From Paraphysomonas bandaiensis (taxonomy: Eukaryota; Protista; Chrysophyceae), in NCBI GenBank assembly GCA_965644295.1, contig CBFFRP010000162.1, forward strand, positions 1 to 64,000: a stretch of DNA of 64,000 nt, given 5' to 3'. This document shows positions 6,301 to 55,463 of this stretch, piece by piece. The notes under the pieces are model-generated. The model saw only the letters and a program-made list of their open reading frames with translations, was not told where the DNA came from and searched no databases. A program made the position numbers and the translations under genes. Numbering within the stretch: the first letter of the stretch is position 1; every line of letters starts with the position of its first letter.

Positions 6301-6881
6301 TGATATTAGCAATAAAAACTCGCCGGCCTTTGCCCACGGCGTGGAGGGCGGTTGCACCCCTACACTCAAAAGGAAGAGGTCAGGTTCGAAGCCCCCTGCC
6401 TTTGGTGAGTCCTGCCTTCACTGCTGTGTTGTAGATATTAACGCTGAGTTTGTATTCGCTTTTTGCTGATACTTATTTACATGTAGTCCGGAAAAGTATT
6501 CCCGGAACTCGACTAAAACGATCCGCATCTCACCCAGCTTCATCCACTTCTAATACCCAGCAGTGCGATACTGGAGGTAGTAGTTCTACTTCAGCAGGTG
6601 TTCCAGGTTCTTCATCGTCTGACACACAGCGGTGCACTATAGACCATAGTAGTTCCACTCGAAGTTGTCCTGTTTTCGGACCGAATTACAACTGGAACGA
6701 TGCTGTTATAAATTATTTACAAAAGCATAATAGCAGTTCATTTCTTGATATTGTTATAGGAATTGTAGGAACTGACAGTTCGGCGATATGTTCCCATTCC
6801 TGTCGAGTTCGAGAGGCGATTAATACGTTAGCACAAGATTTTTGTATTTACATGGATGGAGATAAGTATTGTACATTGTGA
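3322..6881 (+). CDS. RecQ-family ATP-dependent DNA helicase (WRN-like core, RQC, HRDC), 5 exons
   Basis: TGAGKSLCYQ, DECHCVSEWGNDFRPSY, TATAT, VATVAFGMGINKPDIR, QQTGRAGRDG, RQC zinc motif CRRKYLLKYF...CCDMC, HRDC-like segment at 5510-5740. Frame-preserving introns 4377-4431, 4839-4917, 5414-5466, 6405-6486. Confidence 0.93.
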
Positions 6882-15295: not shown

Positions 15296-17491
15296 ATGAC
15301 ACCATATATTATGATAATTAACATGTTATTTGAAATACTTGAATATAAATGTAGTGTATTGTTAGGTATGATTACATGGCCGATAGCACTGATATTAATA
15401 TCTATGGCTATCATTAAGAGACTATGGCATATAGGTACATATATACATATATATACATATATATACAGATATATTAACTAAGATATATTTATAGGTACTG
15501 TATATGATAATATCTCTCATCTTGTAAGTGATGATACCTCAATAATGGATCCATTGTTAAAACTATCAGCTACTGAGATCAGTTATCGTATAAGGGACCC
15601 TCATGATAAGTTAACATCACTTACTATGGTTGAATTATGTATACAACATATCAAAAAAGTTAATCCTTTCTTGCGAGCTGTTGTAGCAACACGATATAGA
15701 GATGCTAGAAAAGAAGCTATGAAAGCTGATCAGGCTGTAGCTGATGGTACAGTACCTCATGATGCACCCTTCTGGGGGGTACCAATTCTAGTTAAAGAGT
15801 GCTTTGAAATACCTGGTATGCCGTATACGGCTGGTATTTATGGTCGTAAAGGGGTAGTTGGTAGTTCACTTGCTCCTGCTTTGCAGAATTTACAGAAACA
15901 TGGAGGTGCTATCATTCTCGGTACTACTAATGTCTCTGAGGCATGTATGTACCACGAAAGTTCTAACCATGTATATGGCACGACAATGAATCCATACGAC
16001 TTTAGGCGCACTGCTGGGGGCTCCAGCGGTGGTTGTGGTGCGGCCGTTGCCGCATGCTGTGCACCATTTGCAGTCACATCTGATGTCGGTGGAAGCACTC
16101 GAATTCCAGCCTTGTACAATGGTCTTTTTGGCCATAAGCCGACTGGAGGCGCTGTGTCGAACGATAACTGCATGCCATGCTGCGGGACAGGAGATATACA
16201 GAGGTACTGTCAACTTGGGCCTACAAGTAAACATGCTGAGGATCTCTGGCCGCTGCTGCAGTGCTTGATGGGGAAACAGCCGAATTCACAGTTGAATAGC
16301 GCAGTGGAGGTAGGTGATGTCTACAATACGTGTTCAAACTCAGTATATTACGACGTTTATGTCATATTCCTATCATGTATGCAAAATGAACTATCATGTA
16401 ATTACAATAAACACTATTGTAGGAGACATTTGACCCCAAAAACCTTGAGGTGTACGTCTTGAAACGAAGCCTGCCTTCATCACTCTTTTCGTCCTCTATA
16501 CACGCTGATATATTGCGGGGCATAGATAAAACTGCTGCCCACCTTCAATCACTTGGTGCCACAGTTCGGTATGACATTGATACCTCATTGGAGCTGCAGG
16601 ACATGTTTACTAATGCTAACGCATTTCAAATATGGGCAGCATTGATGTCCCACCATAAATCGAAGCCTTTCTCGAAAGGTATGTCATGTACAGTCGATAA
16701 TGTTATTTTGTGTGACTGGATTTGCGTGTGATATACAAATAAGTAACTAACCATAATTTTCAGTTATCCGCGAAGGTCTGGATGATGTATGGCTCTGGCC
16801 ACTTGAGTTAATCAAAAGTTTGTTCGACTTGTCATACAATACTTTTCCCGCAGTCGGTTTAGCTGTGCTCGAAGCAATATCTGATATGAAGTTTATGAGT
16901 GCTGAGAATAGTGCCATGAGGGCAATGGGGATGCGGCTTAAGAAATCTTTGCACTCTTTTCTTGCACCTGAGTATGTGGTTCCGAAGGTCGCAAGTGTTG
17001 AGCACGCACCTGTCGCAGACTCCATTGAGTCTGAGTTGGAGAGTACCCCTGAGCATAAAAATATCAACACTTCACGTGTGAAGAAAGAAAAAATTATTCT
17101 CATGCCATCCCTTCCGACTCCCGCTCCATTCCACGGAGAGTCAATAATGCGCATACTGGATACTGCAAACACTGGTTTCTTCAATGTCATGGAGCTACCC
17201 GCCACTGCAGTTCCACTTGGCCTCGAGCGATCTAGTCCCGAAAGACAAACTGGGTGCAGAATGCCCGTTGGTATCCAAGTAAGGCTTGTGTTTGCTTGAG
17301 TTGAAAGTATATACACTGATATGAGTAGCTATTACATAACTTTGTTGTTCTGTAACAATATTGTATGACATCAGGTAATTGGTGGACATGGAAGAGATAA
17401 AGTTACAATAGATATCGCCGTAGAACTGCAGAAAGCAGGAATTGCAAAATGGGAGGCTCCTGTTGAGTTCAATCATGATTTGGATCAGTAG
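15296..17491 (+). CDS. Amidase-signature enzyme, fatty acid amide hydrolase 2-like, with N-terminal TM helix
   Basis: GVPILVKE (Lys), GGSSGG (cis-Ser), SDVGGSTRIPALYNGLFGHKPT (nucleophile Ser), LPATAVPLG...MPVGIQ|VIGGHGRD. The catalytic triad is intact. Confidence 0.9.
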
Positions 17492-24184: not shown

Positions 24185-27100
24185 CTAAGCGAAACTCATT
24201 GAGGCCAAACTAGACAACAAGTGGATAAAATTAGTAGACAAGAGAGAGTGTTCCGATTACACACCTGGCTGTATCATCTTGGCTACGCACTGACATTGTG
24301 TCTGAGTCATCGTTCATATGTCTGTAACCACTCAGACTCTCCCCATCACCACCAAATATGTCAGCAACAGCTGGTCCTCCTTCCTCTATACCCTGATGAC
24401 CTATAGTCGCCCTATACAACATAAGTTATCTCGTTTTCTAGGATCAATATAAAAAAACTAACTGTGGCTGTCGATAGGCTCCGTCGTATCTAGCATCGAA
24501 TCTGCTGTCCGGCCCACCCTGAGGCCTTCTTCTGGAACTGATATGATCTGCACTGTAGTGCATAGAGTCTGGGTGCTCACCCCATGCCCGACCTCCGATT
24601 CCTACCAATATAGGTCAATAACAAGCACGTAAGGTGTATTATATGCCGTGATAGTACACTCCATGCTGTGCGTACAAGTAGTGCCATTACCTTGTGCAGG
24701 TGGTGGTCCACCATATCCTGTGTCGTATGAAGGATGGAAGGAAGGTCCTGGAGGAGGACCATACATCCCGCTCGTCGGGCCTTGCTGCTGTTGCATTGCA
24801 CCTGGAATGCCCGTGCCAAGTGCAGTCATATAAAGGCGTTTGTCGTTAAGGGCGGTGCGGGGCTTTGGTAAGCTGATCATAGATGGCTGGAGATTGTTTA
24901 GCGGTCCCTCTACTAAGCACTCCCTTTCTTGAAAATGAAGTAAAAGAGAGTTCCAAAGAGCGTTGCGTGCCAGCAATCGAGCATTTCCGATGATAACAAC
25001 CCCATATTTGGCTCGGGTGAGGGCGACGTTGAGACGCCTCGGGTCACGCAAAAACCCAATGCCCTGTTGCTCATTGGAACGTACACATGACACAATGATG
25101 AAGTCCTTCTCACGACCTTGAAAAGAATCAACAGAAGCAACTTCGATATCAGTGTAAAGCTCGGTACGCATAGGGCCGTTGCGCTCCATATGAGTTATCA
25201 CATAAGCCCTTTGCCCCTCATAAGGGGTGACAACACCGATTTGTTCCGGCATAATGCCATTCTTGAGCATCATAGTCACTAACTTTTCAACTGATGCTGC
25301 CTCAGTTCTATTCAGGAAAGACGTGCCAGAGGGTCCAATTTCTTCGATGCCATTAGAACAGAGGAAAAACATTGGGCGGGAAGGATTCGGCCATGGGAGG
25401 TCGACACCAGGCAAACTACGTTCGACATCACTCACACCATTCTGCAATGTCCCCTCATAAAACATGTTGGACGGGAATTCCGAAAGCGAGGGGTGCATGC
25501 GATACTGCACCTGCAAACGGATGGGGCGGACGCCGAGGCGCACAAGCCGCTCGAACAGACTCTGCGTGAGTCCAGCCTTAGCTGCCTGTTTGCACATCAC
25601 CACTGGCCCCAGCTGACAGTGGTCGCCAACTAGCACCAACTGCTTCGCACCCATCACTATCGGGATAAGGCACTCACTCTCCATGGCCTGAGTGGATTCG
25701 TCAATGAGGACCTGACGAAATCGAAAATCCATTAGTCTCTTATCCCCTGCTCCGACACAAGTTGTGCATATGACATCAGCAGCTTGCAAAATATCAAATT
25801 CTGCCTTGGATTTCAATGCGCGAAATCTCCTCGCATCCGCAGCAGTTAGGTCACCCAATTCTTCCTTGAGCAAGAAATATTTGCGAAGCTCTGCTGGTGT
25901 CTCCAGGTGGCGCACCATGTAGTGTAGAGTAAGGTGGTCGATAGAAGACGATATGGCTTCTCTTGATTTCGCGGACATACGCACCACTTTGAGTCCTGAC
26001 ATGTGAATCTTTTCGCATAGTTGGTCAACAGCAACATTGGAAGGGGAGCACACCAGTACTTGACCCATATTCTGCTTGGCGAGATGGTACACAATAGAAG
26101 CGCTAGTTACAGTTTTCCCGGTTCCAGGAGGTCCTTGGATAAGACTCAGAGGTTTTTGAATAACAGATCGCACAGCAGAAAGCTGAGAATGGTTCAATTC
26201 CGGTAGACCGGGTACAGAGAGTTTCGATGGCACGTTAACTCTGAGTGCCTGAGGGTCCACCTCGTGGCCAAGAATCCTGTGGTAAAGGTATCCTGACACT
26301 GATGTGTCATCCACTGCAAAAGTCTTCAGTGCAGCTTGCATCCTATCGTATGATGTACTCTTCCATACAAACGTGATAACATACCCTTCCACAATATCAA
26401 TCGGCACAACATTATGCCTCATCTCAAGATGAATGTCACCATGCTCTATTTTCAGGACATGGCCTGTTCCATTCCAGGGCTTGCCGTATAGGCGCGTAGA
26501 AGTAGGATCCAAACTGAGCCGCAGCTCATCTCCAGGAACTAATCGTAGCTCAGTCTCATCTCGACCCAAAAATTGGAATATAGCTACACGTTTTTTGTTT
26601 AATCCCATATCCCATCTAATGGTGATGTCTTCAATGCGGGTATTTTCTTTGATCCTCCGGTCGTACTCGGCCTCCAGCTTTACTAGCGGGCCCAGAATGT
26701 TTTGGTAATTATACCCGTCCTCATAAGCCAGTAGTACTGACTGTACTTCTTCATCTACTCCAGGTCTTTCTAGGTCAAAGAGTGTGGCATCTGGTTTCTC
26801 CCGCCAGAGTTCTTCCAGCTTATTTATCTGGGAAGTTGTGATTTGGCGAGCACGTAGCTGTTCTTGCTCAGTGGGAACCTGCACCAACCAGGGCAAAAAG
26901 GCGCGGTCCTCTATTAACGGCATCCACTGGGAAAGATCCCAATCCATATCCTTCAATGCACCTAGACCAAGACAGGGCTCACGACAGAGTAAAACCACAA
27001 CGGAGTCATTCTTTGCAGGGATGAAGCCTAAGAGAAAGACATTTCTTCCTCCACAGTTGTAGCACTCGAGTACAGTCTCACCCAAGGGGGAGTCCGGATG

Positions 27101-27638
27101 CAGACTAACCTGCTTGTTTCGAGACCGTACTAGATGCTGAATAATATGTGAGGCTGATGTGTTGCCTCTGCCATTACAAAACCACTTGGATGAGTCCACA
27201 CATTTGACAACACAAGCTGGGTCTGACAAGCCGCAATAAGAGCACGCATATTCCGACATATCACCATTAAACCCTTCTTCATCTCCATCTCCACCCATAC
27301 CACTATACATACTCGCGGTCTATAATATCTATCATACAAGTATAGCATATAGATTATATACATACATCAAAGTCGTTGTTACCACCCGTTCCATTCATCT
27401 GTGAGAAGGGCTGTGATAGGGCAGATATTTCCGACCTTTCATCAGGCCAATCACGCTCTTCAGTATTGGTATTACTCTGTTATATAATGAATTCTATGGT
27501 TACTTCTATAATATATGATTATATCACCTGTTCAGCTCCATCTTGCAGTAAATCATTAATATCCAAATGAGATGCTTGAGAGGATATATCCCAAAATCCA
27601 CTGGTATCTTCTGATTGACTGTAAACAGATTTATCCAT
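24185..27638 (-). CDS. UPF1: Regulator of nonsense transcripts 1 (SF1 RNA helicase)
   Basis: CH domain ACSYCG...[69 protein letters not shown]. Two short 5' exons from the ATG at 27638; spliced 3' tail inferred to stop at 24185. Confidence 0.97.
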
Positions 27639-28318: not shown

Positions 28319-31300
28319 ATGAGTTATGATGAAGAAGATGAGCGTACAGAGGAAGATAAGATCATAGAGATCATTAATATTGAAGGGGATGGTGCACTCT
28401 ATGAAGACTCTGATTTTATCCCTAATAGACAAAGTCTATATGAAAATGAAGGTTTTGTACCATATTATGATGCTGATGTTGCAAGTTTAATTGTATGGAG
28501 ACGTCCTCATGATATTGCCAATTATCCTGTATACTTTAGTGAGTCGTATGGTTATCCGAGTGTTACACAGGGAACGTAAGTTCATTTCTATATATAGAAC
28601 ACTATGTATTTAATCTAATTTATAATATAGTCTTTCAGATGAAGTATTTATTGGGGTATTAATGGCTGTCTGTACATACGATGATAGTGAATTGATTGAG
28701 AACATTATATACTCCCGACCTGATGACTTTAAGACTTATGGTGTATTTACTTGCCGGTTCTATGTGGAAGGTGAATGGGTGGAGGTTATTACGGACACAA
28801 GAATTCCGTGTTTAATGGATGAAGAGGATGATCGTGTGCTTCCAGTGTATAGCAGGTCTCCTGTCCGGAAAGAGATGTGGGTGTGTTTGGTAGAGAAAGC
28901 CTATGCGAAGGCGCTGGGGTCATACGAGGCTATCTCGAAAGTAAAGATCCATGAGGCACTACTTCACCTGACGGGGGGCAGTGTGCAGGAGCTGCGTTTT
29001 ACTGAAGATCAACTGGGTGATCAACACAAACTAGCCGCATTCTGGGCTCGTCTCAAGCAGCTTTTGAGTCAGAGAACACTTATCCTGGCTAGGCCCACTG
29101 ACATGGAATGTAATAGGAACGGTGAGGACGACGCTGAGGCAGGTGGGAACAAGGACGAGCCTGAAAATTATGAAGGCATAATCCCGGATCGTCTCTACAC
29201 AGTCGTAGCTTACAAAGAGGTAGGCATGAACGAGCTTGTGTTATTGCGGTGCCCTTGGGAGCTGGAAGACAAGCGGATCGAGTGGGAAGGAGATTGGAGC
29301 GAGAGTTCTTCTAAATGGGACGAGTATCCTGATATGTTGGCGGCAGTACAGGATGATCCCAACATTAAGTGGAGACGCAACAATCCCAGAGGATTTATGT
29401 GGGTGGCATACAAGGACTTCATGAAGCTCTTTCAGGCCATATTCGTCTGCAAATTGTTCCGAGGGGATTCCTCTCATTGCCACTATTACTGCGCAAAGGG
29501 AGAGTGGCGAGATAAACAAGCGGGAGGGCCCATGCTTTCCATTCGAGATAGGGGTGAGGGTGTAAAACTGGCGATGAAAGAAGAGATGCGATCTTTGCAA
29601 AAGGTACCCGTCTGTGATATGTTATGGTGTTTGGTAAACTAACTCTATCCAATTTTCTCTGCAGGCGACAGCTGCCGTGATAGTTGACGGAGATGCTTCC
29701 TGGTTCAACAATCCTCAGTACAAGGTTGTTCCTAGTGCAAATGCGGTGCTCAATATATCCCTCTGTCCTGTTAATGTGGGTAGCGATGACCCAGACTCCG
29801 CGGATCCAAGTCCGAATACGTTGCCAATGGTATCAATTAATGTAGTGCGTATTAATAGCACAATGGACATGAACCATCCCAGTGTCGGTGATTCGTTGAT
29901 GTGCAATGTAATAGCGAATGAGAAACAAGAGGGCGTGCATAGACAGAAGGCTCAGGAGGCGTCAATATGGAACCTACGAGTGCAAGGCAATGCGACATAT
30001 TTCATTGTTCCAAGCACAGCCAGAAGGGGCCAGAGATGTGGGTTTTTATAGTAATATGTAATTAACAGGTTTGATGTGTTCTTATCTATAGGTGGGTATG
30101 TCCTGCGTGTGTTTTCATCGGAGCCACTTACTCTTGAGCGCGTGCCCCCACGCATTATCCGGACTACCACAGGAGAGTGGACCAAGAGCTCTGCAATGGA
30201 CAGTACTGGCGGCCCTCCTCTCCTTGCCCTCCAGTCAGAAGATAAAGCTGCTGCTGCCACTATGGTTGAAAACTCAAAGTGGTGCCAAAATCCACAATAC
30301 CACTTGAAAGTTACAGATGACTCTGAACGTGATAATTTATATATTAAAATAGTGGTTCGACGAACGGATAAAGTATCACAGAACACTCGATCAACTGCGG
30401 CATCTGAGCACACGAAAGATGCCTTCATTGGGTTGGTTGTTTGTAAACCCGAGATTCAGGAAGAGGTAAAGTCGCACGGGTCTAAAGTTGGCAAGCCGCG
30501 CTTGAATCCATTCGGCGAGGTGATCGAGTGTAAAGCTTCCTCACTTAAAAAACCTCAGTCACGGAGTTCTAGTCGCCGTCCACAAACTGCTCCAAAGCCG
30601 AATGACGAGGAGCGGAAAGTAACTCGAAAGATTGCACTTAATCCGCTGTACTATTCTCAGACAACAACATTCAACAGTCGCACTGAAGCGTCCGTGTTCT
30701 TTCCGAAGCTCCCTCGAGCATGGATGCCAGATGGTCTACTTCTGATTCCATGTTTAAGTGAACGAGGTGTGCGGGGTATATTTGAACTGGAGGTGTACGC
30801 TAATTGCCGAGTGTCATTGGAACAGCTTCCCGAAACACGTTCACGCAGCATTGCAGGCGAGTGGGTCGAGAACCTTTGTGGTGGGTCGCACATATGCCCG
30901 ACTTACAAAAAGAACCCGAGATTTCAACTCGATCTCATTCCGCCATCTGCTCCCTCCAAGGGAAGTAAAGAACCTTTTCCCACACGAATTGGTGTTCGAA
31001 TATCACTGTCGAAAACGGGTTCCTCATGGCGGTCACAGTGTCGCAAAGATGCGGTCGGCTGTATGGTAGGCTTCTATGTCTTTATCGTATCTCGCAGTGA
31101 GAACGGACCAGAGTCACTCAGACAGATATACGAGAGTCCTTTTGCCCCTACTGAGGAAGTCAGCACGGACATAGGGTTCGAACTGGAGTTTCTGCCTGCG
31201 TCAACAGACACTTACATTATCATGCCCACCACTTTCGATGAAGGAAAAGTGGGGTCTTTTGTGTTGTCGGTATCAGCGGATTGTGACTTTACGCTGACTC

Positions 31301-31329
31301 GCGACACACCAGCTTCCACTCATAAGTAG
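28319..31329 (+). CDS. Calpain-like protein (CysPc plus three domain-III repeats), catalytically inactive
   Basis: WRRP, GVFTCRFYVEGEWVEVITDTRIP, WVCLVEKAYAKALGSYE, LTGG, EWEGDWS; three GEW...GG...NPQY/NPRF repeats. Introns at 28576-28630 and near 29604-29664 and 30039-30091. Confidence 0.88.
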
Positions 31330-39073: not shown

Positions 39074-42000
39074 CTACTCATCATTTCGTCGGAGATAAGA
39101 CGCTGGTGCCCACCCAACCTGTCCATAAGTGTTCCGTACAGACCACCAATCCTCCTTGGTGGCATCTTCTATAATCACCGTCTCACCTGCGCGCATATTA
39201 AGCATACCCTCCTGTGCTGCGGCACAATCGAACATAACGGTTGCAGAAGGAGGGAGTGATACTTTTGGTTTGCTTCTCGCTACAGGACGTGGTACGATTG
39301 GTGGCGCTGGGACATCGGAAGATTCCTTTGCAGGCCGAGGTGGTGGTGGAGGCGGGGCATCAGAAGATTCCTTTCCAGGCCGAGGTGGTGGTGGAGGAGG
39401 GACATCTTCTGCTTCGGATTCAGCCCTAGATGTTGAATGCTCGAATGATTTCTTTGCAGTATTTCCTGAAGATATAATATTCCCACCAGCAGATACCATG
39501 GTTACATTAGGAGTAACGGAGCGACGAGGCTTCGCAACACCGGTTGCTGAATTGCTGCCAGCACCGGACAACATCGATGGAGCAAGACTGGAAGTTACTG
39601 CATCTGTGACAGCACGGCCAGTCTTAGACGGAGATTTACCAGCTTGTATAACTACAACATCATGTTCGCGAAATTTTTCGTCTATGATTTTGCCTTGAAA
39701 CTCTTGCAGAAGGTGGTTTAAATCCTCGTTGTTCACTCGCTGGGTTCGGTGACCACTATATGAACAATAATGAAGATAAAGTTTGAAACGATCCTTGGAT
39801 TCTACTGGAGCCTGTCGGACACTATGAATAACTCTATATATGAATGGAAACATCTCACCTGCTGCCGAATGAACATAGCGACGTAGTTGTCAATAGCAAC
39901 GGGGGGTGGGAAGCAGGACAACAGCAGCGATAACATTTTCCACCCCATTGCCAAGGACTCATGAGACGGGTTGTCCGAGAGCTGTTTCATGGTTTGCACA
40001 TACATCTCGGTGCGCATGGCCTCAGATCCTTCAATGCCCGTGTTGAGATATTCCACAGCAAGCATTGCGGGGTCTGCGCAAATATATCGTTAATGTACTA
40101 TCACATTAAAACCAAATACGCACATTGATACTTTCTGTCTCCCATGTAGCCCATTAGGTTCTTGAATTGTTTCACAGCTTCCTTTGCTTCCTTGTTATCA
40201 TGCATTGCAGTCAAAGACTGATGGATCGGTGCCGTTGTGTACTTGAGCATTCCTTTGCAAAGTTCAGTTTTGTTAGTGCCTATTCCGAAAAATTTGCTCG
40301 AGGCCCACTCCATCCCATTTCTGAGTACACCGCATGCTGGGCCAAACTCGAACATAGTGCCATGCATGTCCAGAATTAAATCCTTCAAGCGAATCTCCCT
40401 GTTGATTCGCCGGTCCTCATCACCCATTTCAGTCGCCCTAGTCAATTGCTTTCGTACGAATTTATCTTCAGGGAGCCCCAATGTAGTCTGAATCTCAGTT
40501 ATAGTAGGGCTGTTGTAGGTGTAATCCCTGGCCTGCTCGACTGCAGTCTCCATGTCGGGCTTACTTAGGCGGTTTAGTGCCTCCATCGCCATACGTTCAA
40601 TTTCAGCAACCGCATCTAGCCACGACTTGACTTCCTGTACACAGGGGCTGCTGTAAGAGTACCCTTCTGCCTCCGCAAGAACTTTCTCCATCTCTGACTT
40701 GTCACGAGCGTCGTAAGCCCTCTCAGCCCAAGGATCTATCTTGTTACTGATCTCAAGCCACCTTTCCACCTCTTCTATTTTTGGGCTACTGTAGGCATAC
40801 GCTTTCGCCTCTTGTACAACAAGAATCATCTCACATTTATCAAAAACCTCTAGCGCCTCTTTCGCCCAAGGTTCTAACTTGGCACTGGCAGCCTTTCTAA
40901 GTTTGTCCCTTACTATTTTCTCGGCTTTACTATCACCTCCCTGCCCAGGTATGTGGGAAATAGCATTCGAACGCGTCACAGCAGAGGCGAAATCAGCGAA
41001 GTGCACAGAGGCATCCATGTCCTGCAGCCGACGGAACTCCTGTTCCAACTCAGTCCACTCTTGCAGGGCAAAACGGCGTTCACGACAGGCGACCAGGTAA
41101 TGCGGATCGAAATTGTATATCGCACGATACGGAGCAAATGCATCATTGCTCAGCTGGATAGCATTATCGAACAGAGACACATCATTGCCATTCTTGAGTG
41201 CGCGGTCGCATATTACTTTAACGCGCTTGAGGGCTGCTATACACCGCCGAGATATATACCTCCGCACTTGTCGTTGTGCGATGGCATATATGGTATCGAG
41301 ATAGAGATTGCGCAGCAACTCTAGCACTCTGTGCTCTTCTGCCCGATATAAAACCATTGTACGCCCGATAGCAACTCCAGAGAAGTCTTGTGGTACACTC
41401 TCCAGGATAGTTACACAAGCAGTTTCCATATCCTGGCCTCGGGGAATAGTGATGGAACCATGCTTCTTCTTGAGTAAATAGTGATACCGTGATACAAATT
41501 CTGCGTGAGGAAGCCGAAAAGGATACCCAGTTTTTCGAATCTGTACAGCTTCAAATACCCCGGCGTATGTGAGCTGCTCCAGACACATTACGGCGTTGAA
41601 CTGTTGTGGTCGCTTCGCGTCATTGGGTTTGATACAGCGGATATAGTGAGGGTGTGTCAGGTTACAAACATCCATGAGGTTATTAAGTTGCTTCCTAAAG
41701 GCACCACCCAGTGTATCCACACGCCTAGGGTTGCTGTCTTTGACAGGGAAAAGCTGTTGGAAGTTGGGATGACTTGCGGATGACATTAAATCATAAAGAT
41801 CACGAAATACACTGTCTCTATTCTTATCGCAAAACCCGGTACAATCATACCCCACAGCACCTGCGATGAAGAGAATTTAGTTTTATAGCAGATATTAACT
41901 GCACTACCCACCAGCGTAGTGAAGTACAAAGAAAGAAGTCTTTGATTTAGACTGCACCTTTAACCAGTTCGGGTGGTTGGCGTGGTGAGTGGAGCACTTG

Positions 42001-44159
42001 GCAAGCCACTTTAGCTCGTCTCCTTTTGGTAACCTCACCTCTTCATCTAAGAGATTCATCAAACCGTAGGGTTTCTTCTCGATCAGATCCAGGACTGTCT
42101 GGTTATCGATGAAAGTGACTGGCTCGTACGGCACGCCTTCAGACTCGTAAACATGCTCTTCCTCTTTGAAAGTGTGGGCATTGAAATGTTGCTGCAGCTT
42201 TTCGTTTGTGAAATTGATGCACAGCTGCTCAAAAGAATTCTTCTCAAAAATTTCGAAACCAAATATGTCAAGGACCCCTATGAAGTGTCCAGACTCTCCT
42301 TTCACGGAGGCATTAATCCGCATCACTAGCCAATTAAACAGCTCGTTGTATACTGCCTTAGCAAGGGCATCAGCAGCTTCCTGAGCCTCTTTCGGTTTGT
42401 GTAGAATGTGATTAACTTCGCCACGTATCTCCAAGGTACGATGGCAGAGCGCATTTATTAGTCGCGTGGTCTCGATCTACAAAAAATATGTACCGCGTTG
42501 TCAGAGTACTGTACAAGGATAAATACCCAACCTTCAAGTATTTAGCGGCAGCGTCAACTGCAGTGTTGCACGATGGATCCACTACACTGCCTTCATCATC
42601 AGGCAAAAAAGTCACATTTCCCAGATGCAGTATTCCTGCCACACACTCCATTACCCACTGGATATCGCTCTCAGAAAACTCCAGCTGGTGGAACGCAGCA
42701 CTACAACGATATCACTGTAAGTGAGCAGCACAATATAAGGACTACGAACGTACGTGAGATCAGAGAAATCATCGCTATCGTTGATACCAGGAACAGTGAT
42801 GCACCCGCTGCTACAGAGGTAACGAAAACCCATCGGTCCGCACGACAAACCAAAAGATGATGCCATGTTAGCACAGAGCTACAGATTACGAACTTTAGTT
42901 GAGGACTGCGCAGACATAAGGTCATCATCAATCACCTGATAAAACACATGATAATTTCTTTCGCCTTTATTCTGGAAAACAACTCGACTCTTTTCAAGTA
43001 GGTAATTTTCAATGGCTGCCCCGATGATGCTTCCTCGCCCAGAAAAGTGGACGGCTGTCCATCGGCCAAATCTCGAAGAGTTATTATTTCTGAGAGTCTT
43101 GGCATTTCCGAAGGCCTCAAGGACAGGGTTAGCGTTTAGAATTTTCTGCTCAAGTGCGGATTCCGACCCCGCTATTTCGGCCAAAAAATTGAAACATTGC
43201 TTGGTTGCCTCCGTTTTTCCAGCACCTGACTCGCCCGATATCAGGATAGCTTGATTCCGGAGCTCCGACCTCAAATTTTCATAAGCAGAAGAAGCGATAG
43301 CGAAAGTATGAGGGGGGTCCAATTTATTTGGTGACGGATGGGCAAATTCTGTCATTGTTGAAACAGTGTATATAGGTAGCTGTTTGAATGGATTGATGCT
43401 CACCAATACACTATGAGATGCCCCGACCCAAGTATAGATCTGGTCAGCATTGTACCGTTCCCTAAGTAAATGAATCATCTGTGCCTGGTTGAGGCTGTCC
43501 ACCATGACCATATCGTCCACCTGACTTCCCAGACTAGATTTACTCAGATTCCACAAAGGCTCTTTGGCAGACTGTGTTACAGTCGTCATCGACTTGTCGG
43601 GAAGTACAACAGTGACGTTCGCCCCTGATCTTTCCTTTACTCGCACAGGAATCCAAGCCTCCACAGGATCCGATAACCACACCCATTCTCCGTCATCTTC
43701 CGCGCGTTCTGCGTCACTTTTAAGTGCATACGGTTTGTCCCATGTGACCGATTCAGACAACGTATTGTAATAATAACACACACCATCAGCAGTCAAGCGC
43801 TCTTGCCACATCTTATCAACATCTACACCACTTCTATGAGTAGAAGAAGGTCGACGACAAGGACGTGAAGGAGGAGGTGGTGGTGGTGGTGGATTGGGAC
43901 GATCAATTACTGATACTAACTCTTCAATCTCTTCTATAGGGGTCCAATTACTCATACCATCACACCAAGCCATATTACTACGACCAATACACTGTATACA
44001 TACAATATATACCGTATTAATAGATTATCTTCATAGATATACTGTAGTTATATATATATCTACCTTAGCTTTAACGAGAGAGATAATAGCCTCAGCTGTC
44101 ATTGGATCAGAGGCCTGATTACCAGCGTTATCTACGTAGTAATAATACTTATCTGGCAT
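39074..44159 (-). CDS. Unconventional myosin, class IV-like: GYF_2 - WW - motor - IQ - MyTH4 - Pro-rich - SH3
   Basis: P-loop GESGAGKT, NNNSSRFG, DIFGFE, HYIRCIKPN; WW WQERLTADGVCYYYNTLSESVTWDKP; MyTH4 RTEMYVQTMKQLSDNP...GWKMLSLLLSCFPP; SH3 DWWSV...GWAPASY. First intron 43992-44063. Confidence 0.93.
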
Positions 44160-44818: not shown

Positions 44819-47148
44819 ATGTCAGATGTCTTACTATTCATTAAGGCGTATCTTAAAAAGAAAGGATACGATAAAGCAGCTAGTGAATTAGATGAAGAGA
44901 TAAGAGAGAAGCATCCCTCACGGTCCAGTCAAATATCTCATACATCACCATTCGGTACAGCTACTAAACTCATAATGGAATTATATGAAAATGAAGATAG
45001 ACATCGTGTATTAGTGGGGGATTATGAGATATATCGTAACTGGGTGTATGAGTCGATTGATATGGTCAGACCTGAGCTACAGGCTACATGTTTCCCTCTA
45101 TTTGTAGGCAGGTATGTATATATATGTATATATATGTATATATATATGTGTATATGGATATATGTATAGATGTGTGTGAGTATGTATCTTATAAAAAGGT
45201 TATTATAATCATTTTGTTTATGTGTTTTGTATACAGTTATATTCTTATGATACGGTCAGCGCTCTACACTGAAGCAAGACAGTTATGGGATGCTGTGAAT
45301 GGCGATTTCATCGATTCTCATGCAGTAGAGATACGGGCACTTTCCCAATTTAATAATGTGTCGCAGTTGAACACTTCATTCATACAAGATAATACTTTCG
45401 TGTACGTATGTTGAGTCGCGGTCGTGTTGTATGTTTACATTTGCTGCTGCAGGAGGCGCGCTCTCCGCGGTAAATTTTGTCTGCAAATATCAGTCCTCGC
45501 TTTTGAGCTACTAAAACGTTTCTTAGTTGAGCGTGGCCTCTTGTCCATCCTTTATGTACTCAACTCAACTATCGAATTCAATATATATCAAAATGGGATG
45601 ACAGAAACAACCGCCTGTTCTGCGAAATTGGAGGACCGTAATTCTACTGGTAAGTCTAATTGCAGTGCGAAGAGTACATCTTATCGATGGATATATGCAG
45701 CAAACCATCAGTCGTTGGATCTTCCCAAAATGACCTGGGGCGTTATGGGCAAGGGTCCATACACAGTGGAGGGGTTGACTTCGTCTGACATCCTTCCTGA
45801 CTTGTCGGACCCTTATTTCAGTAACATTTTAGAGAAGCTTGTGTACCCTAAAATTTTACTTCGGGGGAGAAAGGAAGACGAAGATGGTGACGAGGGCGAT
45901 GATGACTCTGGCGATGCTCTTGAGCCTTCTGTAGTTTTTGCTTCTTTTGGCAATACCTACGGCGGCATGACATGTCTTTCTATGTCCCGTGACGCGAAGC
46001 AGGTGGTAGGTGGATTTGACGACTCTTCTGTTCGTGTGTGGAGCTACAGTGCTAACACTTTCCAGAAGCAGTCGGAAAATGAAGGGGACGATTTTGTCGG
46101 AAATATGACCGAGATACTACCGAGGTATACGTCAGAAGGAAGTATGGAAGAGAGCAGTAATGTTGAGGGTAATTCGTCGACCCCATCCCTACATCGTACA
46201 ACTTCAGCGGGGTCTCAGGTCGGAAATAAGGATGGCAGCACCTATCCATACACATTGACTTTGCGTGGGCACGTGCGTCGCGTATATGGTGTATCCCAGG
46301 AAGAATACAGCGGAGAATTACGACAGGTATTATCGTGTTCAGCTGACGAGACAGTGCGCCTCTGGGACACGCACCTAGGCCGGTGCGTAGCGCGGTATGA
46401 CGTATGCGAAGGGGTGCCTTGGGATGTGAGCATGAGCCCACTTGGCTACTACTTCCTCACTGCCAATCAGTGTAAAACGGCCTCACTCTTCTCGACAGAC
46501 CGACTATTCAGTTTGCGAGTATTCAGTGGACACACCAGTGATGTAACATGTGTGGCTTGGCACCCTAACATGGCTTACGCAGCCGCCGGTAGTGACGATA
46601 GATGCGTTCGCCTTTGGGACATTCGTGCCAAAGGAGAATGTGTACGCTGCTTCGGTCCAGGAAGGGTGCGAGGGACGGGACTTCATGATGGTGCTGCAGC
46701 TGCGGCGTCTTTGTCACCTGTCACCGCTATACAGTGTTCACCTTGCGGCGCCATGCTGGCTGCTGGATACGAGGACGGTACCATCGCATTGTGGGATGTG
46801 CCCTCTCAACAGCTGTCTGCTATACTTTCCGGTAGTGTAGACGGCGGGAATAAGCTGAAGAAAGGATTAAAGCGAATGCGAAGAGATCCCACTGCACCGG
46901 TGTACTCGGTCGCATTTAGTGCTGACAGTTCGGCTATAGTTGCGGGTGGGAGGTCTGGAGTTTTAGGTATATGGAATATCTCACCGGCCTCTAGGTGGAG
47001 TACTGAAAATGGAACCTGTCCCCAGGATCAGCTGCTTATATCTCCACACAAATCATTTCTCACGAAACATACACCTGTATACTACGTTGGATATGGTACC
47101 AACAACATAGTTTATGCGGGAGGAGCAATTGACATACCGTCGTACTGA
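44819..47148 (+). CDS. TAF5: TFIID subunit 5 (LisH, NTD2, WD40)
   Basis: YLKKKGY LisH; NTD2 YRNWVYESIDMVRPELQATCFPLFV; WD40 PWDVSMSPLGYYF, LRVFSGHTSDVTCVAWHPN, FLTKHTPVY. Confidence 0.9.
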
Positions 47149-48592: not shown

Positions 48593-49489
48593 AACACTAG
48601 ATAGTTAAATTAATTTGCTACACTAGTTCAGAAGTAATAATATCAAATGATTTCTTCGCCTTTTTACATACATACATATTGTACGTATAAATATGAAAGA
48701 GGTTATAACCGAATAGTTTGGAACCGTATGCTGTACAGTGCTAGTTTTGTGTAATAATAGTTTCGGCAGATATGGCAATCATTTTATTGACATCTTGCTT
48801 TTATTGACTGTTTAGACTGGCATTCTACTATAGATCACAAGAAAACATATTTATATGAGGATGATAGCATCAATGTAAGCAGTTTGGAGTTTACTATTTG
48901 GTGAATAGCTTGTTGACAGAGACACAGACAGTACAAATTCTAATATTGAACATGGATAGCGTTCTTCGTTGCAGGTATGTATCAGAATTGTTCGATGTTA
49001 TAATATATATATAGAATATAGTAGATGAGTTAGGTGATTATGAAGTGTAGTTTATGATTAAATCAAATAGATTTCTAAGATACACAAGCATAATCAATAT
49101 AATATATCAAAATTTGCTTAAATAATAACCAATATATTGTTCCAAGCAAAACTAAACAATTGCAACCCAATTTAATTTTACCTGGCCCTGCTAGTTCTGA
49201 CTCTTACACGCCTATTGCTAATAACGAGACATTCACTACTGCAGCAGTAAGTATAAACCAATTCAAGTTATGGAAATATTGAGCAAATATTCGACAAGAC
49301 CAAATGGCCTATGTGACATACCCATTTCAAACTTCCTATATTTTAAACTTATAAAACACTACTTACAACACAACATCAATGACTACAAGATATAGAGTGG
49401 AGTAAGTACCACACAGGCTAGGTATAGCACTTAAATAAATGTAGCTGGTTCTAATTATCACCTCATACTAGAAGCTGCTTGGAACACAG

Positions 49490-52400
49490 CTATTCTTCCA
49501 AGTCATCATTTCTTTGATGTATACCCACACGAGCGTGCAATGTAAAAATTTCCATAATTGGACAATGTACTTTCATCAACGCCGCCAGTCCACGAAGCAA
49601 ACCAACAGTGCGGCTAATAAAGTAGTACTCTTCCGGAATGTGTCTTACGGAGCGAATACTACTACTCTTGTGACCAGAGGCCCTGTCTTCCGCACGTTGA
49701 GCACTTCGCATGTCATTGAACAGTTTACGTTCTGTATGTGAAGTCTTCAAGTCCTGCAAGTATCTATAAAGTCATATACGATAACACAGGGCTGCATACG
49801 CCGCGCATCACATACTCACATTGGCATCACGAAAAAGGAATTCAAAAAATTCCCTGTCTCTTTCTGGTGCTCGATCGGACTGGTTGTTTGCGTACCCAAG
49901 ACTCTTAAGTGCCCGGTCGACCCCTGCTATATCCTCCTCCTGAATACTAATTAGCAGATGGCAGTATGCCAGTCGTGTTTCGTCATTGATTCTGGATATG
50001 AAAATATGAGTCAACAGAGTTACAGAAACAAAATTATAACAGTATATTAGAGAGCGAGCCACAAAAACTATCTACCTTTTCGTAATCCCAAAATCTAAGA
50101 GCCCGGGGTGCCATAACTGGTTTCTCATAGAAGGTAATTCTTCAACTGGCAAGATTTTCGACTCTATTCCTCCTCCCTTTTTAGTCGCAGCAGGTGCGTA
50201 TGCAACAGGCGGTGCACAGTCGTCTACCGAAGATTCTACACAGAATACATTCCCAGGGTGGGGGTCGGCTGCGACACGTTCAATACATAATAGGTAAAGG
50301 AAATGACAGAGGCTTACCGTTAAAACATCCAGCAACAAGCATATGGTAGGCGAGGGAATGTGCCAATCTGCACAGCAAGGAAGACTTGTCCACATTATGT
50401 AAGGATAAAGCGAAATCGTCTGTAATCTAAATTGATGTCAACAAGACTCCACGAATGCCAACTGTTTATCTACCTTAAACCCTTTAAGCTTGGTCATTAC
50501 AAATACTCTACGGTGAACATATCCCCTGATAGGTGAGGGAATAAGCGTTCCAAATCCTGCCTCCTGCATAGCGTTTTGTGCCTATAATACCGTTACGCAT
50601 ACACATATGTGCACGGATAGCGTTGTACACATATAAACCTAAGCAGGTGCGGTAATCAATATACCTCTACTAGATTTTTAGCCTCTATTCTGAAATCTAG
50701 CTCCTCAGCTATAGTTCGTTGCCACACTTTTATCACCGTCAAAAGTGCCTACGCCACCAGAAACACAATTAAATTACAAAAAAATATTGGATAGTGATAC
50801 CTCCCACTTGGGATCCATTCTGCTTGCAACCTTTGCAATAAATAGGGCGGCGCTAATGTCAGTCATCAGCAGAGTTTCTACCCCAGGGTGCTGGACTTTC
50901 ACAACAACATCGCGGACAATGCCATCCACAAGCATCGTTGCATTATGCACCTGCGCTACGCTACCAGATGATTGAGGATTCATGTCGAAGCTCTCAAACA
51001 TCTCTTCTATTGTCCGAATACGGTTTCCATGTCGGTACCCAAATATCTGTTCTTCTCTACGACTGCTAGCACTTAGGCAAAACTCGACTGTAGAGCGCAC
51101 ATGTAGAGCCGACGACTGGGGACAGTTGTCGTGTAAACATCCCAGTGTCGTAGACCAGAGGGCAGACACCAAGTCTGGGCGGCCAGCCACATATTGCGCG
51201 ACCTTAATAAACACAGACTTCAGAGAACGAACTTCCGTCAGTACATATGCCGCCAACACACGGTCCAGCGCGTCGAAGGCAGCCGTATACATATTTCTGT
51301 TTTCATTTTTAGATTCTGCATACACCAAAGCACTCGAAGAGTCCGCGGCGACATGCTTCCGGCAGCCGCAGAGCCGTAAGATAATAGTTAGGTATAGGTA
51401 TGCCGATACCACAGTAGCTGTAGGAGTGTATATAGTGAACATCCGCTCCACAGTCATGATCCATGTAAGAACTCTCGCTTGTGCACTCCAGGTGCAGCAC
51501 TGTTCTCCATAAATTTTCACTTGTGATATTGAGTGATGTAGAGCGGTCGATAAGATCCAGGTACAAAAAATAACACCGAAACCAGGTCTAAACACTACTG
51601 TAGACACTGCCGCTTTAGCAAGATCGTACACAATTACCAGAGGCGGGGAGCACGATCGGAACACAGTCGGTATCTGTTGGGTGACTATGGAGGCGCATAA
51701 TACAGAAAGAAGAGAGGTAAATATTGGAAATATTAGGTAGCCTACCAGGGCAACTGCGGCAGGTGCCCGGGTATACTGCATGGCACACACGAGGGTGAGG
51801 AACCCAAAGCCTACTACAGAGAGTGGGAGAGGGACCACCAAACCCACACACACCTCCCATATTAGCACTAGCATAGGTTTCTCAGACAGATGAGACTGAT
51901 TTAAAATAGCGTAGAGTGTGGATATAAAAGTATCGGTTGACGACATCAGCAGAGGCAGACTAACCCCAATAACAAGGACAAATATTGTGCCCCAAAGTGT
52001 TACTCTAGGCAAGAGGTACAAGAACACCGACGCAGCAGCCGCAGTCACAGATTTCTCACCGTCACTACTACGAGGCCAAAAAGACGATTCCTCTGCCTTC
52101 TCCAATCGTCGGCGCAAAGAGAACACCTCTTCGCGCAAAGCTGTACTAGGACTGTGTGAACGGGAAACAATTGGCCCTGTGTTCTGCACATGAGCAGCCC
52201 ATTGGCATTCACGATGCAAGGATTCAGTACTGTGAGTGACTGACGACGGATGAAAATACTCCACAGTGGGCGAATCGTTGCTAATTGTAGAAGCAGCATG
52301 ATGTCGTGCCCGTATCAGGGCTTGATGTCGCCTCACATTCTCACCATCATCTCCCTCAAATTCGCCATTACCACTAACCTGTCGACCCTGCTCTTCGCTC

Positions 52401-53167
52401 TCAGCAGACTCGCTATGTCCCTCAGATCCAGGAACTGCCCCAAGGAACTGAAGAACCGCCTCATCCATGGACCCTATCTGAATTATTACCAGCTGCACGA
52501 ATAATGAAAGGTCTTCCATTCGACGGCGAACAACTTTAGGGTCTACTGATGAATTGGACATCAGGTGTCGTCGGGGAAGTTGAGGCAAGTTAGGATAACC
52601 CTTGCTTTCCAACTGCTTCCGAAAAGTCACAAAATCAGAAAAGCGATGCGATGTTTCCCAGTATATACCACCTATTCTATCTATTGATCGAATCACATAC
52701 ACTGTATGGCGGTTGCCACCTTCATCAATCTTTTCAAATGTTTTCTTAATTGAAACATCGAGATTAAAATTCATACGATTCTTTTCCATCATAACTTTTA
52801 CTGCCGCACGAAGATGTATACTTAATTCACCAAATACATTAGTATCACCATATAATTTAATATGTCCACCCATTAAAGCTGACATGGGCTTTAATATCCC
52901 TCTGGATATCTTTGCCATTGAATAAGAGTCTGTTAATACAATACAATCTATATTAGATTTCTCAATTCCACGTGATGAGATACGTTCCGTTCCTTCCCCT
53001 ATCTTAACAAGCCAATTAAAATCTTCTTCAACACGAAATACAAGTGTTTTCATATGATTATTATGAGATGCTTGAAGAACTTGTTCATGAAGATATTTAA
53101 AGTATTTAGAGATACAAACACGATTATCATCAAGTGAAAAGATCTTCTCAGGTGAAGAAATAGACAT
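49490..53167 (-). CDS. ABC1/UbiB (ADCK) atypical kinase fused to N-terminal SCP2 and PX domains and a multi-TM region
   Basis: Kinase motifs FIKVAQ...RPDL, SGSVAQVH, VVKVQHPG, ELDFRIEA, ADPHPGN, LLDFG; SCP2-like RGILKPMSALMGGHIKLYGD; PX-like HTVYVI...WETSHRFSDFVTFRKQL...PQLPRR...RRRMEDL. Confidence 0.88.
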
Positions 53168-53269
53168 GATGATTGATGAGGATGTGGAGATTATGGTGTG
53201 AGATTGAGTGAGTTTGGTGCGTATACAGATACTGACTGCTATAGATCTCTATGCGTGATGATAAGGAGC

Positions 53270-53270
<1 letters not shown>

Positions 53271-53300
<30 letters not shown>

Positions 53301-53792
53301 TGTATGTATGTATGTATGTATGTATGTATGTATGTATGTATGTATGTATGTATGTATGTATGTATGTATGTATGTATGTATGTATGTATGTATGTATGTA
53401 TGTATGTATGTATGTATGTATGTATGTATGTATGTATGTATGTATGTACGTATGTATGTATGTATGTATGTATGTATGTATGTATGTATGTATGTATGTA
53501 TGTATGTATGTATGTATGTATGTATGTATGTATGTATGTATGTGTATGTATGTATGTATGTATGTATGTATGTATGTATGTATGTATGTATGTATGTATG
53601 TATGTATGTATGTATGTATGTATGTATGTATGTATGTATGTATGTATGTATGTATGTATGTATGTATGTATGTATGTATGTATGTATGTATGTATGTATG
53701 TATGTATGTATGTATGTATGTATGTATGTATGTATGTATGTATGTATGTATGTATGTATGTATGTATGTATGTATGTATGTATGTATGTATG

Positions 53793-53826
<34 letters not shown>

Positions 53827-53872
53827 TGTATGTATGTATGTATGTATGTATGTATGTATGTATGTATGTATG
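53271..53872. repeat. (TATG)n microsatellite, about 150 units
   Basis: Near-perfect array beginning about 103 bp upstream of the ABC1-kinase ATG. Confidence 0.98.
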
Positions 53873-55463
53873 AATGTATGCATGTACCCCTGTACCTAAA
53901 TGAGAGTACAGGAGTACGATTCCTGTCCCTCAACAACTTCTGATTGGTTGGGTGGATATATGGCACACAGGTACAAGTACATATGGAAGTGGCGTACCCA
54001 CAGAAAAAAACTGTAGAAACTTCCCAGTTTTTTTTTTCAGTTTATTTCCCATCCAGACACCGTATTACACACAGTTTCATACGTTAAGGTCCCCAACATA
54101 TGTCAATCATATGCTCAAACAGTGATACATATCACATAAACACACTAGGTTACCAATAGAACATGCAATTCTGGAGGTGTGGGGTCCAACTTCCACAAGT
54201 TTTGGTGGAAATTTTCTTGTAAGATTGCAATTGTTATCCTGCATCAAAATTATGGAGAGCTCCTGAACTCACTGTGAGGTACATAGCAGAGACCAGTTGC
54301 TGAAAACAATGTTGTGATTGCAAAGATTAGATTGTGAATACTGATTTTGGATTCGTTAATAAACGGTCAAGAAGTATGCACAGGTCATTATAGGAGGATC
54401 TGTCCTAATTGCACCATCCTTGTTGCACTTAATGATCCCATATGCCCTCCAATTCAATGAATCGTGATCATTCTTACTGTTTGAGTGATATGAATATGAT
54501 ATTGGCATTCATCTCTTATTTTGTTGGAATTATGTGCATTCGTTGACAGATCTCTATATCTGTATTGACATCCATAGTCCCAAACCCCTTATAACCACAG
54601 GTGTAGTTGTCCAATTATATTACTTTATTATGTTGCAGTGTTTATGATACTGTTTTAATGATTTGACTAATATAAGTATGCTTTGATGAAATATTGAGGC
54701 CATATTGGATGGAGTTGCTACTTTGCAGATGCAATATAATACGCACGTATGTCGCCTTTGAAGCAATGAAAACGGAGTTAAAATAGTTATAATAACTCAC
54801 TACAAACATCCAATTTGATTGGGTAAAGTTGATATCATGTCATACATCCTTCACTGTTGGTGAGGAATTACGATTACATGTATAAAACTTATGCGAGTTT
54901 ATAGATATACTTATGCGAGTTGTGACATTGTAAGAGTGGCAGACAACATTTACAGCGACTTGTACAATACGTAACCCCTTTATTATTCATCCTTAGACAG
55001 TGTGGCTTTAATATATTTGCAATAGGCTTCTGTCATTTACGTTTCAATAGCTACTATTACTACAGCACCGTTATATATCACCTCTGATAAATTCACCACA
55101 ACCTATATCCTATATATATTATTGTTATCCTGACTGTTTACTTGATCATTTGTGGTTCAAAAAAACAACCTTCTTGTTCCAATCGTTATATTATACTAAT
55201 ATACTACTAAAAAAGGTATACTGTCAAAGGACGACATCAGATAAATGACGCCACAGCAGTGCCACATATTAAATACTAAATACAAGCTCTTGTTACAAAA
55301 AGTCTCATGTGAGCAAAATTAAATCACGAGATACAAATACAAACAAACTTCGATAGCAAATAAAAGATTCGATAGGAAATACAAAAGCGGTAACAAATAC
55401 AAAAGCGATAGCAAATACAAAGGCGATAAAATGTGCACATACGTGTTGCGTGTAATCAATAAT

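Follow-up and report, generated by a model that had tools for sequence, protein, structure and literature searches.

What might a UbiB-type enzyme do if it were tied, in one polypeptide, to a lipid carrier and to an address label for membranes outside mitochondria and plastids? The question is raised by a gene at 49490-53167, on the minus strand of contig CBFFRP010000162.1 of Paraphysomonas bandaiensis (assembly GCA_965644295.1), within the 64,000 nucleotides (positions 1 to 64,000 of the forward strand) that we refer to as the window. Its product carries an SCP2-like lipid-binding domain, a PX domain, a multi-span membrane block and an ABC1/UbiB kinase domain. UbiB proteins are ancient, linked to disease in the case of COQ8A/B, and mechanistically unresolved. 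An earlier note, written from the letters of the window, took the fusion for a candidate undescribed lipid-handling protein acting outside mitochondria and plastids. The analysis described here places it within a widespread protist UbiB subfamily, in an architecture that we have not found described and with an endomembrane site of action implied by its sequence relationships.

That the fusion is genuine can be answered directly. One uninterrupted frame of 797 codons (50774-53167, minus strand) holds SCP2, PX, the membrane block and the kinase N-lobe, and the DPHPGN (residues 891-896) and DFG (residues 948-950) motifs lie in a later exon, exon 5, as the earlier note had read them. From genomic DNA, a seven-exon model with six introns of 47-84 nucleotides, all canonical GT..AG, matches exactly the span which that note had assigned to the gene. 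Two RNA contigs from different studies (3516 and 3663 nucleotides), aligned with 49300-53260, each run from upstream of the ATG to past the stop codon and lack all six predicted introns, the exons being joined exactly where predicted (CT..AC as read on the plus strand), confirming the model joint for joint; transcripts starting downstream of the PX domain, a prospect that would have undone the fusion, are not what these contigs represent. A third RNA run contains five of the six splice joints, as does a polyA marine metatranscriptome, there on two separate contigs. The gene stretch is present in public marine runs, both seawater metagenomes and polyA marine metatranscriptomes, and the 62.5-Mb assembly contains one copy of the gene. 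The first intron (exon 1/intron 1 boundary at 50800-50801) occupies one and the same codon position, after K-W-[E/K/T], in each of the four metagenomic orthologues. Prokaryote-style gene calls on the orthologue contigs run through this first intron into junk tails.

This is therefore a real, expressed, single-copy gene of a marine protist. The suspicion that two or three neighbouring genes were merged by mis-assembly, or by a frame read through their boundaries, is already refuted and retains virtually no probability: the 797-codon frame holds three of the modules and the start of the fourth, the whole coding sequence is covered by individual spliced RNA contigs in each of two studies, with joints recurring in the polyA marine metatranscriptome, and the same domain order is found in distant relatives, about 25 of them, that were sampled independently.

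On the single sequence, the SCP2 assignment is marginal, with Pfam SCP2 (PF02036) matching exon 1 at residues 38-113 with an E-value of 1.6e-4 and 22.4 bits against a cut-off of 21.3. At family level it is robust. The corresponding Pfam matches in relatives extend down to an E-value of 2e-8, and a profile of 24 N-terminal module sequences finds mammalian SCP2 in the PDB (rabbit/human; 1c44, 1qnd, 2c0l) at 3e-9 over nearly the whole chain. The C-terminal SCP2 signature of the gene product, G.LKPMSA..GG.(I/L)K..GD, appears in the module alignment as G.LKPM.A.L.G.LK..GD. An AlphaFold model of residues 1-250, built with the family alignment, has a mean predicted local distance difference test (pLDDT) score of 88.4 and a predicted template modelling score of 0.67, and adopts an SCP2 fold from about residue 12. 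Foldseek matches this model, at probability 1.00, to SCP2 proteins of Yarrowia/yeast, Thermus, mosquito with a bound C16 fatty acid (0.67) and rabbit (0.60), within a range of target-normalized template modelling scores of 0.54-0.68. The SCP2-like domain that the earlier note placed at about residues 20-117 is thus present, and is predicted to bind a lipid.

For the second domain, Pfam PX (PF00787) matches exon 1 at residues 169-242 (E-value 1.8e-8; 35.3 bits, cut-off 21.6), and the same 24-sequence profile retrieves PX structures led by CISK/SGK3 (1e-19), followed by Nischarin, SNX11, SNX3 and KIF16B. Structural comparison of the model agrees, again at probability 1.00, with 4oxw (target-normalized score 0.85), SNX24 (0.82), Grd19p/SNX3 bound to phosphatidylinositol 3-phosphate (PI3P) and p40phox among the matches. 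The residues to which the earlier note pointed, within a PX domain read at about residues 135-243, are all present: HRF is H174-R175-F176, PQLPRR occupies residues 195-200 and the distal arginine is R216. These fall at the R-[YF], PxxPx[KR] and distal Arg positions, which we take to be the PI3P contacts of PX domains. Among 24 relatives at 20-50% identity, R175 never varies, and at least 90% of them retain R216. The domain thus appears to carry canonical PI3P-type binding residues, and PI3P binding is predicted.

How the protein begins bears on where it could act. Upstream of the ATG, the reading frame is closed by a stop 28 codons away, inside the sequenced 5' untranslated region (UTR), with no Met between, and transcripts cover the whole coding sequence from upstream of the ATG; together these leave no hidden N-terminal extension. 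Since, in addition, the SCP2 fold starts from about residue 12, there is no room for a targeting peptide, in keeping with the earlier reading that no organellar targeting peptide was obvious. Acidic residues occupy positions 7, 13 and 14. These features tell against the idea that the protein is a conventional organellar UbiB, engaged in making or distributing coenzyme Q (CoQ) in mitochondria or in a relict plastid, where its membrane block would insert and PX and SCP2 would bind organellar lipids rather than PI3P. That idea draws on the mitochondrial or plastidial location of COQ8, Cqd1, Cqd2 and plant ABC1Ks, as given in PMC8346625 and in the abstracts of other papers, and on the capacity of internal membrane segments to target organelles without a presequence; the PI3P-type residues kept in the PX domain count against it as well, and we return to it below with evidence from the wider family.

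Between PX and kinase lie a linker and a membrane block. The linker spans about 125 residues by orthologue alignment and is of low pLDDT. Hydropathy over five orthologues gives clear spans near residues 388-408, 434-460, 470-490 and 584-602 and weaker segments at 506-540 and 560-575, a total of five or six within residues 380-602, consistent with the several transmembrane helices of the earlier note. The sequence of the block is conserved among close orthologues only, except that two residues of the final segment ahead of the kinase, R575 and Y590, do not vary across the whole family. An equivalent spacer with three to eight hydrophobic segments occurs in every relative examined, including those in which a FYVE finger takes the place of PX. 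AlphaFold prediction of the whole of exon 1 (789 residues, five sequences) gave a mean pLDDT of 39.6, too low for interpretation.

The kinase domain continues from exon 1 into the smaller exons. Pfam ABC1 (PF03109) matches exon 1 at residues 718-788 (E-value 1e-14; 54.7 bits, cut-off 22.9), and the small downstream-exon reading frames, taken singly, gave no Pfam match. Once spliced, residues 631-1071 align over the whole domain with residues 47-436 of a full, bona fide UbiB of 570 residues (E-value 7e-31), and a profile of the full kinase domains of the clade described below matches COQ8A/COQ8B and mycobacterial (Mtb) ABC1 structures at about 1e-43. Every residue for phosphoryl transfer is present: K757, EELDFRIE (residues 804-811), D891 and N896 in NADPHPGN, and D948 in LLDFG. 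Little or no variation is seen at K655, Q658, Q739 and H741, and the beta3 lysine, K757, also falls in an invariant column. The glycine-to-alanine variant of the KxGQ motif is shared with two relatives, P0009 and P0042, and with one bacterial member. Motifs and alignment thus indicate that this is a complete UbiB/ABC1 atypical kinase domain with all catalytic motifs intact, for which activity is predicted.

Family membership does not amount to orthology with the bacterial enzyme. With the kinase domain of P0009, a close relative, standing in for that of the window protein, scores fall below the bacterial UbiB equivalog cut-offs (177.8 against 487.55 for TIGR01982; 145.9 against 667 for NF003404), and by these models the protein is a member of the UbiB/ABC1 family and not an orthologue of bacterial UbiB. 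A low-complexity insert of 50 residues separates HPGN from DFG (residues 897-947; 50096-50248); its counterpart measures 57-91 residues in P0009, P0016 and P0053, and 11-17 in FYVE-type and bacterial members. Some PX+ABC1 relatives have DWG in place of DFG. The protein ends at residue 1098, about 150 residues past DFG, with no beta-lactamase or other C-terminal domain.

The architecture is not unique to this genome. A word-indexed protein search found four orthologues on metagenome contigs, with 38-48% identity and the same three Pfam domains; a similar search with the SCP2-PX region of P0016 returned only P0016 itself. Such searches reached only close orthologues, and their empty results carry little information on named relatives. 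A profile search across 1.84 billion cluster representatives went further, yielding 119 proteins at E <= 1e-10, whose architectures were read from Pfam scans of each protein, with representatives taken from clusters at 50% identity. SCP2+PX+ABC1 proteins account for about 25 diverse representatives, all from metagenome or SRA assemblies. Around them lie variants on the same theme: PX+ABC1 (P0038, P0049, P0058, P0082); SCP2+FYVE+ABC1, often with a C-terminal beta-lactamase domain (P0033, P0035, P0037, P0039, P0040, P0074, P0080); FYVE+ABC1 (P0053, P0067, P0077); SCP2+PX+ABC1+beta-lactamase (P0044, P0095); and ABC1+beta-lactamase (P0046, P0076, P0106). P0035 has an added PH domain, and the 1318-residue P0009 (L016:1563-5519) adds a C-terminal acyl-CoA-binding (ACBP) domain, which brings the lipid-binding modules on this scaffold to three.

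Ten clusters of the family hold ENA, Logan or JGI sequences only, and the single name attached to them by a pipeline is 'putative sterol carrier protein'. Searches of the ESM Atlas gave no usable match with exon 1 and only generic ABC1 clusters with P0042. In the literature we found no paper on the SCP2-PX-transmembrane-ABC1 architecture, nor on an ABC1/UbiB protein that carries PX, FYVE or SCP2 in the same chain, although reference proteomes or InterPro may list it; nor did we find a functional study of the ABC1/beta-lactamase subfamily. The novelty claimed for the protein is thereby qualified: no paper found describes the architecture, but about 25 representatives share it. A widespread family of protist proteins has, in the collections searched, surfaced only in unannotated metagenome and SRA assemblies.

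A maximum-likelihood tree built from 433 columns of 49 full-length kinase domains (root not inferred) brings order to these variants. All proteins with SCP2, PX or FYVE N-terminal modules fall in a 22-row clade with support of 100/99, joined at 100/99 by a 5-row sister group (100/98) with the same kind of architecture. The window kinase sits in a 100/100 subclade with P0009, P0016 and P0042, and the PX-bearing group as a whole has moderate support (82/76). The nearest annotated kin are ABC1/beta-lactamase domain-containing proteins, known by automatic annotation from streptophytes and many protists, which share the well-supported kinase clade; it includes ABC1+beta-lactamase, FYVE+ABC1+beta-lactamase and SCP2+FYVE+ABC1+beta-lactamase proteins, and in an unnamed Atlas cluster of 80 members, also among the nearest kin, 55% carry SCP2 as well. 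The window protein differs from these kin in having PX instead of FYVE and no beta-lactamase domain, a lineage-specific loss or absence that extends to P0009, P0016 and P0042. It may thus be a derived offshoot of a broad ABC1 subfamily, in the rest of which beta-lactamase is usually present as well. An ancestor with FYVE and beta-lactamase, a swap to PX and then loss of beta-lactamase would accommodate the pattern; the tree having no inferred root, this direction of change is a suggestion rather than a result.

The exchange of FYVE for PX is more telling than the order in which it took place. PX and FYVE are unrelated folds, both of them mainly PI3P readers on the cytosol-facing membranes of endosomes, vacuoles and autophagic compartments. 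In sister proteins of the same kinase clade, a FYVE finger occupies the slot held by PX in the window protein. That either reader can stand between a homologous SCP2 domain and a homologous kinase points to selection for the combination of SCP2, PI3P reader and UbiB, and argues that targeting to PI3P membranes has been maintained by selection. Indirect as it is, this interchange provides the strongest evidence here for action outside mitochondria and plastids, and it lends independent support to the earlier proposal of a cytosol-facing, extra-organellar site. Were the shuffling of PI3P readers common in this lineage, a further PX fusion would in itself be less remarkable, but the conservation across lineages would stand regardless.

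The interchange also weakens the case for an organellar UbiB. In addition, the genome encodes at least four other ABC1/UbiB loci (C127:30820-31605, C141:92393-93309, C201:16881-17820 and C277:186407-187334) that could serve organellar roles. Their matches to the window kinase are weak (E-values of 1e-6 to 7e-4), and the C127 kinase, the one of the four placed on the tree, is placed beyond the SCP2/PX/FYVE clade; presumably, these loci encode organellar paralogues, for instance COQ8. Taken with the N-terminal features set out above, we consider an organellar role for the window protein improbable.

What, then, might the protein do on such membranes? We propose, with a confidence that amounts to an even chance, that it is a PI3P-targeted UbiB ATPase that extracts or deposits a very hydrophobic lipid and exchanges it with its own SCP2 domain. 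With no signal or transit peptide, the SCP2-PX module would stay in the cytosol; the hydrophobic spans would anchor the protein, and PX would hold or concentrate it on PI3P-rich membranes of endosomes, the vacuole/lysosome or autophagic compartments. ATP hydrolysis by the UbiB domain could drive extraction of a very hydrophobic lipid from the bilayer, or its deposition there, with the SCP2 pocket serving as acceptor or donor in cis. By analogy, polyprenyl quinones such as CoQ would be the likeliest class of cargo, with sterols or neutral lipids as alternatives; sterols and acyl lipids stay among the candidates because of the ACBP domain of P0009 and the SCP2 matches to sterol and fatty-acid carriers.

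Two known systems lend this proposal substance. Coq8, Cqd1 and Cqd2 share with the window protein the kinase-like domain with KxGQ, A-rich loop, beta3 lysine, HPGN loop and DFG (family profile against COQ8 structures, E-value about 1e-44), as well as a membrane span directly N-terminal of the KxGQ domain; their ATPase activity is proposed to be coupled to extraction or deposition of CoQ, the activity on very hydrophobic lipids that we propose here (PMC8346625). They differ in being mitochondrial, with one transmembrane span or none and without SCP2, PX or FYVE, whereas the window protein lacks a presequence and has, besides its multi-span block, two further domains for lipid recognition, and its kinase belongs to a separate clade together with the ABC1-beta-lactamase proteins. 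In Escherichia coli, UbiB is an ATPase that works alongside an SCP2 protein holding quinone intermediates: the SCP2 domain of UbiJ binds ubiquinone intermediates (PMC6747719). UbiT is a further such protein, and the genes lie in the order ubiE-ubiJ-ubiB. UbiJ and UbiB are separate proteins whose physical coupling is not established, and bacteria have no PI3P reader; in the window protein both activities would reside in one polypeptide, much like a Rosetta-stone fusion.

The main competing explanation is that of a signalling kinase, in which the substrates of the ABC1 domain would be proteins, or the head group of a lipid, on PI3P membranes, and SCP2 would be a gating lipid sensor rather than a carrier. 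In essence, the protein would be the UbiB-fold counterpart of SGK3, a PX-bearing protein kinase. The PX domain is indeed closest to that of SGK3/CISK in sequence and in fold, and the two proteins would share a logic in which a PI3P reader brings a kinase-fold enzyme to endosomes; SGK3 differs in being soluble, with a canonical AGC protein-kinase domain, where the window protein combines SCP2 and a membrane block with a UbiB fold. Conservation of every phosphoryl-transfer residue would suit a signalling kinase, as would plastoglobule ABC1K6, reported as an Mn2+-dependent kinase (PMC8956952). Opposing this, the UbiB fold of COQ8 occludes protein substrates and supports ATPase activity (PMC8346625); KxGQ and the A-rich loop, which define the occluded site, are retained here, and the lipid-binding modules added in relatives (ACBP, SCP2) suit lipid handling better. 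On balance, we view a signalling role as rather unlikely.

A lipid-handling ATPase on PI3P membranes must also be weighed against several observations that count against it. Distant PX-type relatives do not all retain PxxPx[KR], and some PX domains bind other phosphoinositides, or none. By hydropathy the membrane block has five or six spans, and the positive-inside rule, applied by eye, leaves both counts in play; with five, the kinase would lie on the lumenal side, opposite SCP2 and PX. SCP2 modules from four members of the family were compared with NCBIfam models and gave no match (E <= 0.01), and hence are not UbiJ/UbiT-like by curated models; the window SCP2 is closest to eukaryotic SCP2. 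The echo of the UbiJ-UbiB pairing that the earlier note perceived is for this reason a functional analogy, and not a matter of homology or of common descent of the two partners. Among plant ABC1K proteins, some are reported to be genuine protein kinases (PMC8956952). Finally, the endosome/endoplasmic reticulum contact site, lipid carriage and ATPase-driven transfer are inferred, and ligand, ATPase activity, PI3P binding and localization are predictions for every member of the family.

Should a lipid-handling role be borne out, its reach would extend beyond one protist. The exit of CoQ from mitochondria has been described as a long-standing mystery (PMC8346625). In its boldest form, which we rate as a long way short of probable, our proposal would make the clade the machinery, long sought, that handles very hydrophobic prenyl lipids outside mitochondria, with CoQ or related lipids loaded by the UbiB ATPase onto the SCP2 domain of the same protein, or unloaded from it, at the membranes of endolysosomes or autophagic compartments. 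If so, the SCP2-UbiB fusion would be direct genetic evidence that UbiB enzymes hand lipids to SCP2-type carriers, and the bacterial UbiB-UbiJ pairing would be explained too. In more modest terms, the covalent tie between UbiB and SCP2 supports the lipid-extraction model and hints at the recipient of the UbiB substrate, and the PX/FYVE label would place a UbiB enzyme on endomembranes rather than in mitochondria or plastids. The compact N-terminal module, with its high-confidence fold, is well suited to ligand identification.

Table 1. Coordinates, in window positions, of the gene and its parts, with residue numbers of the 1098-residue product
Feature	Position	Strand	Evidence
Whole coding region, ATG to TAG; 7 exons, 1098 residues	49490..53167	-	Gene model and spliced RNA contigs
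5' UTR, at least 93 nucleotides	53168..53260	-	RNA contigs
Exon 1 (residues 1-789): SCP2, PX, linker, membrane block, kinase N-terminal part	50801..53167	-	
SCP2 lipid-binding domain (residues ~8-132)	52772..53146	-	Pfam, family profile, AlphaFold2 pLDDT about 90, Foldseek
PX domain (residues 134-245)	52433..52768	-	Pfam, PDB profile, Foldseek, conserved R175/R216
Putative phosphoinositide-binding positions of PX: R175-F176 (RFSDF), P195..P198-R199-R200, R214-R216	within 52433..52768	-	
Low-complexity linker (residues 246-372), ending in a conserved charged helix (residues ~343-360) just before the first span	52052..52432	-	
Hydrophobic multi-span block (residues 373-606)	51350..52051	-	Hydropathy
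Kinase N-terminal part in exon 1 (residues 625-789)	50801..51295	-	Pfam ABC1, motifs, UbiB alignment
KVAQ (K655-Q658, KxGQ variant), A-rich loop SGSVAQVH (734-741), beta3 lysine K757 in VVVKVQH	within 50801..51295	-	
Exon 2 (residues 790-817), alphaC Glu motif EELDFRIEA	50665..50748	-	Gene model, RNA contigs, motif reading
Exon 3 (residues 818-853)	50474..50581	-	Gene model, RNA contigs
Exon 4 (residues 854-890, last codon split)	50318..50426	-	Gene model, RNA contigs
Exon 5: NADPHPGN catalytic loop (DPHPGN 50249-50266), variable 50-residue insert, DFG (50087-50095)	50076..50268	-	
Exon 6, kinase C-lobe	49820..49991	-	Gene model, RNA contigs, UbiB alignment
Exon 7, end of kinase C-lobe; stop TAG at 49490-49492	49490..49753	-	
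3' UTR	49300..49489	-	Transcript contig coverage

The surroundings of the gene are those of an ordinary eukaryotic genome. Its neighbours in the window include a RecQ-like helicase with HRDC (3322-6469), an amidase (15545-16462), a UPF1 helicase (24602-27310), a calpain with domain III (28662-31329), a myosin with N-terminal WW and SH3-like domains (40101-43973) and a WD40 protein (45424-47148). Elsewhere in the assembly there are several full-length, apparently intronless silicon-transporter loci (C348, C406, C398, C150, C405, C298, C149), and a search of the assembly for the chlorophyll a/b-binding (LHC/FCP) and PsbO families gave no match. The combination points to a silicifying marine protist that lives heterotrophically, or else to an assembly without LHC/FCP and PsbO genes.

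Directly upstream of the 5' UTR lies a near-perfect tetranucleotide microsatellite of the ACAT/ATGT type, about 770 bp in length (53198-53966), which has no stop in several of its frames and there encodes YIHT or MYVC repeats. Sequencing runs filed under a second organism label differ from the window by a 4-nucleotide AGGA insertion at 53178, in the 5' UTR, and by single bases at up to four places (49434, 53190, 53196 and 53225). All of these differences lie outside the coding sequence, and the two labels probably denote strains of one species, or two names for it.

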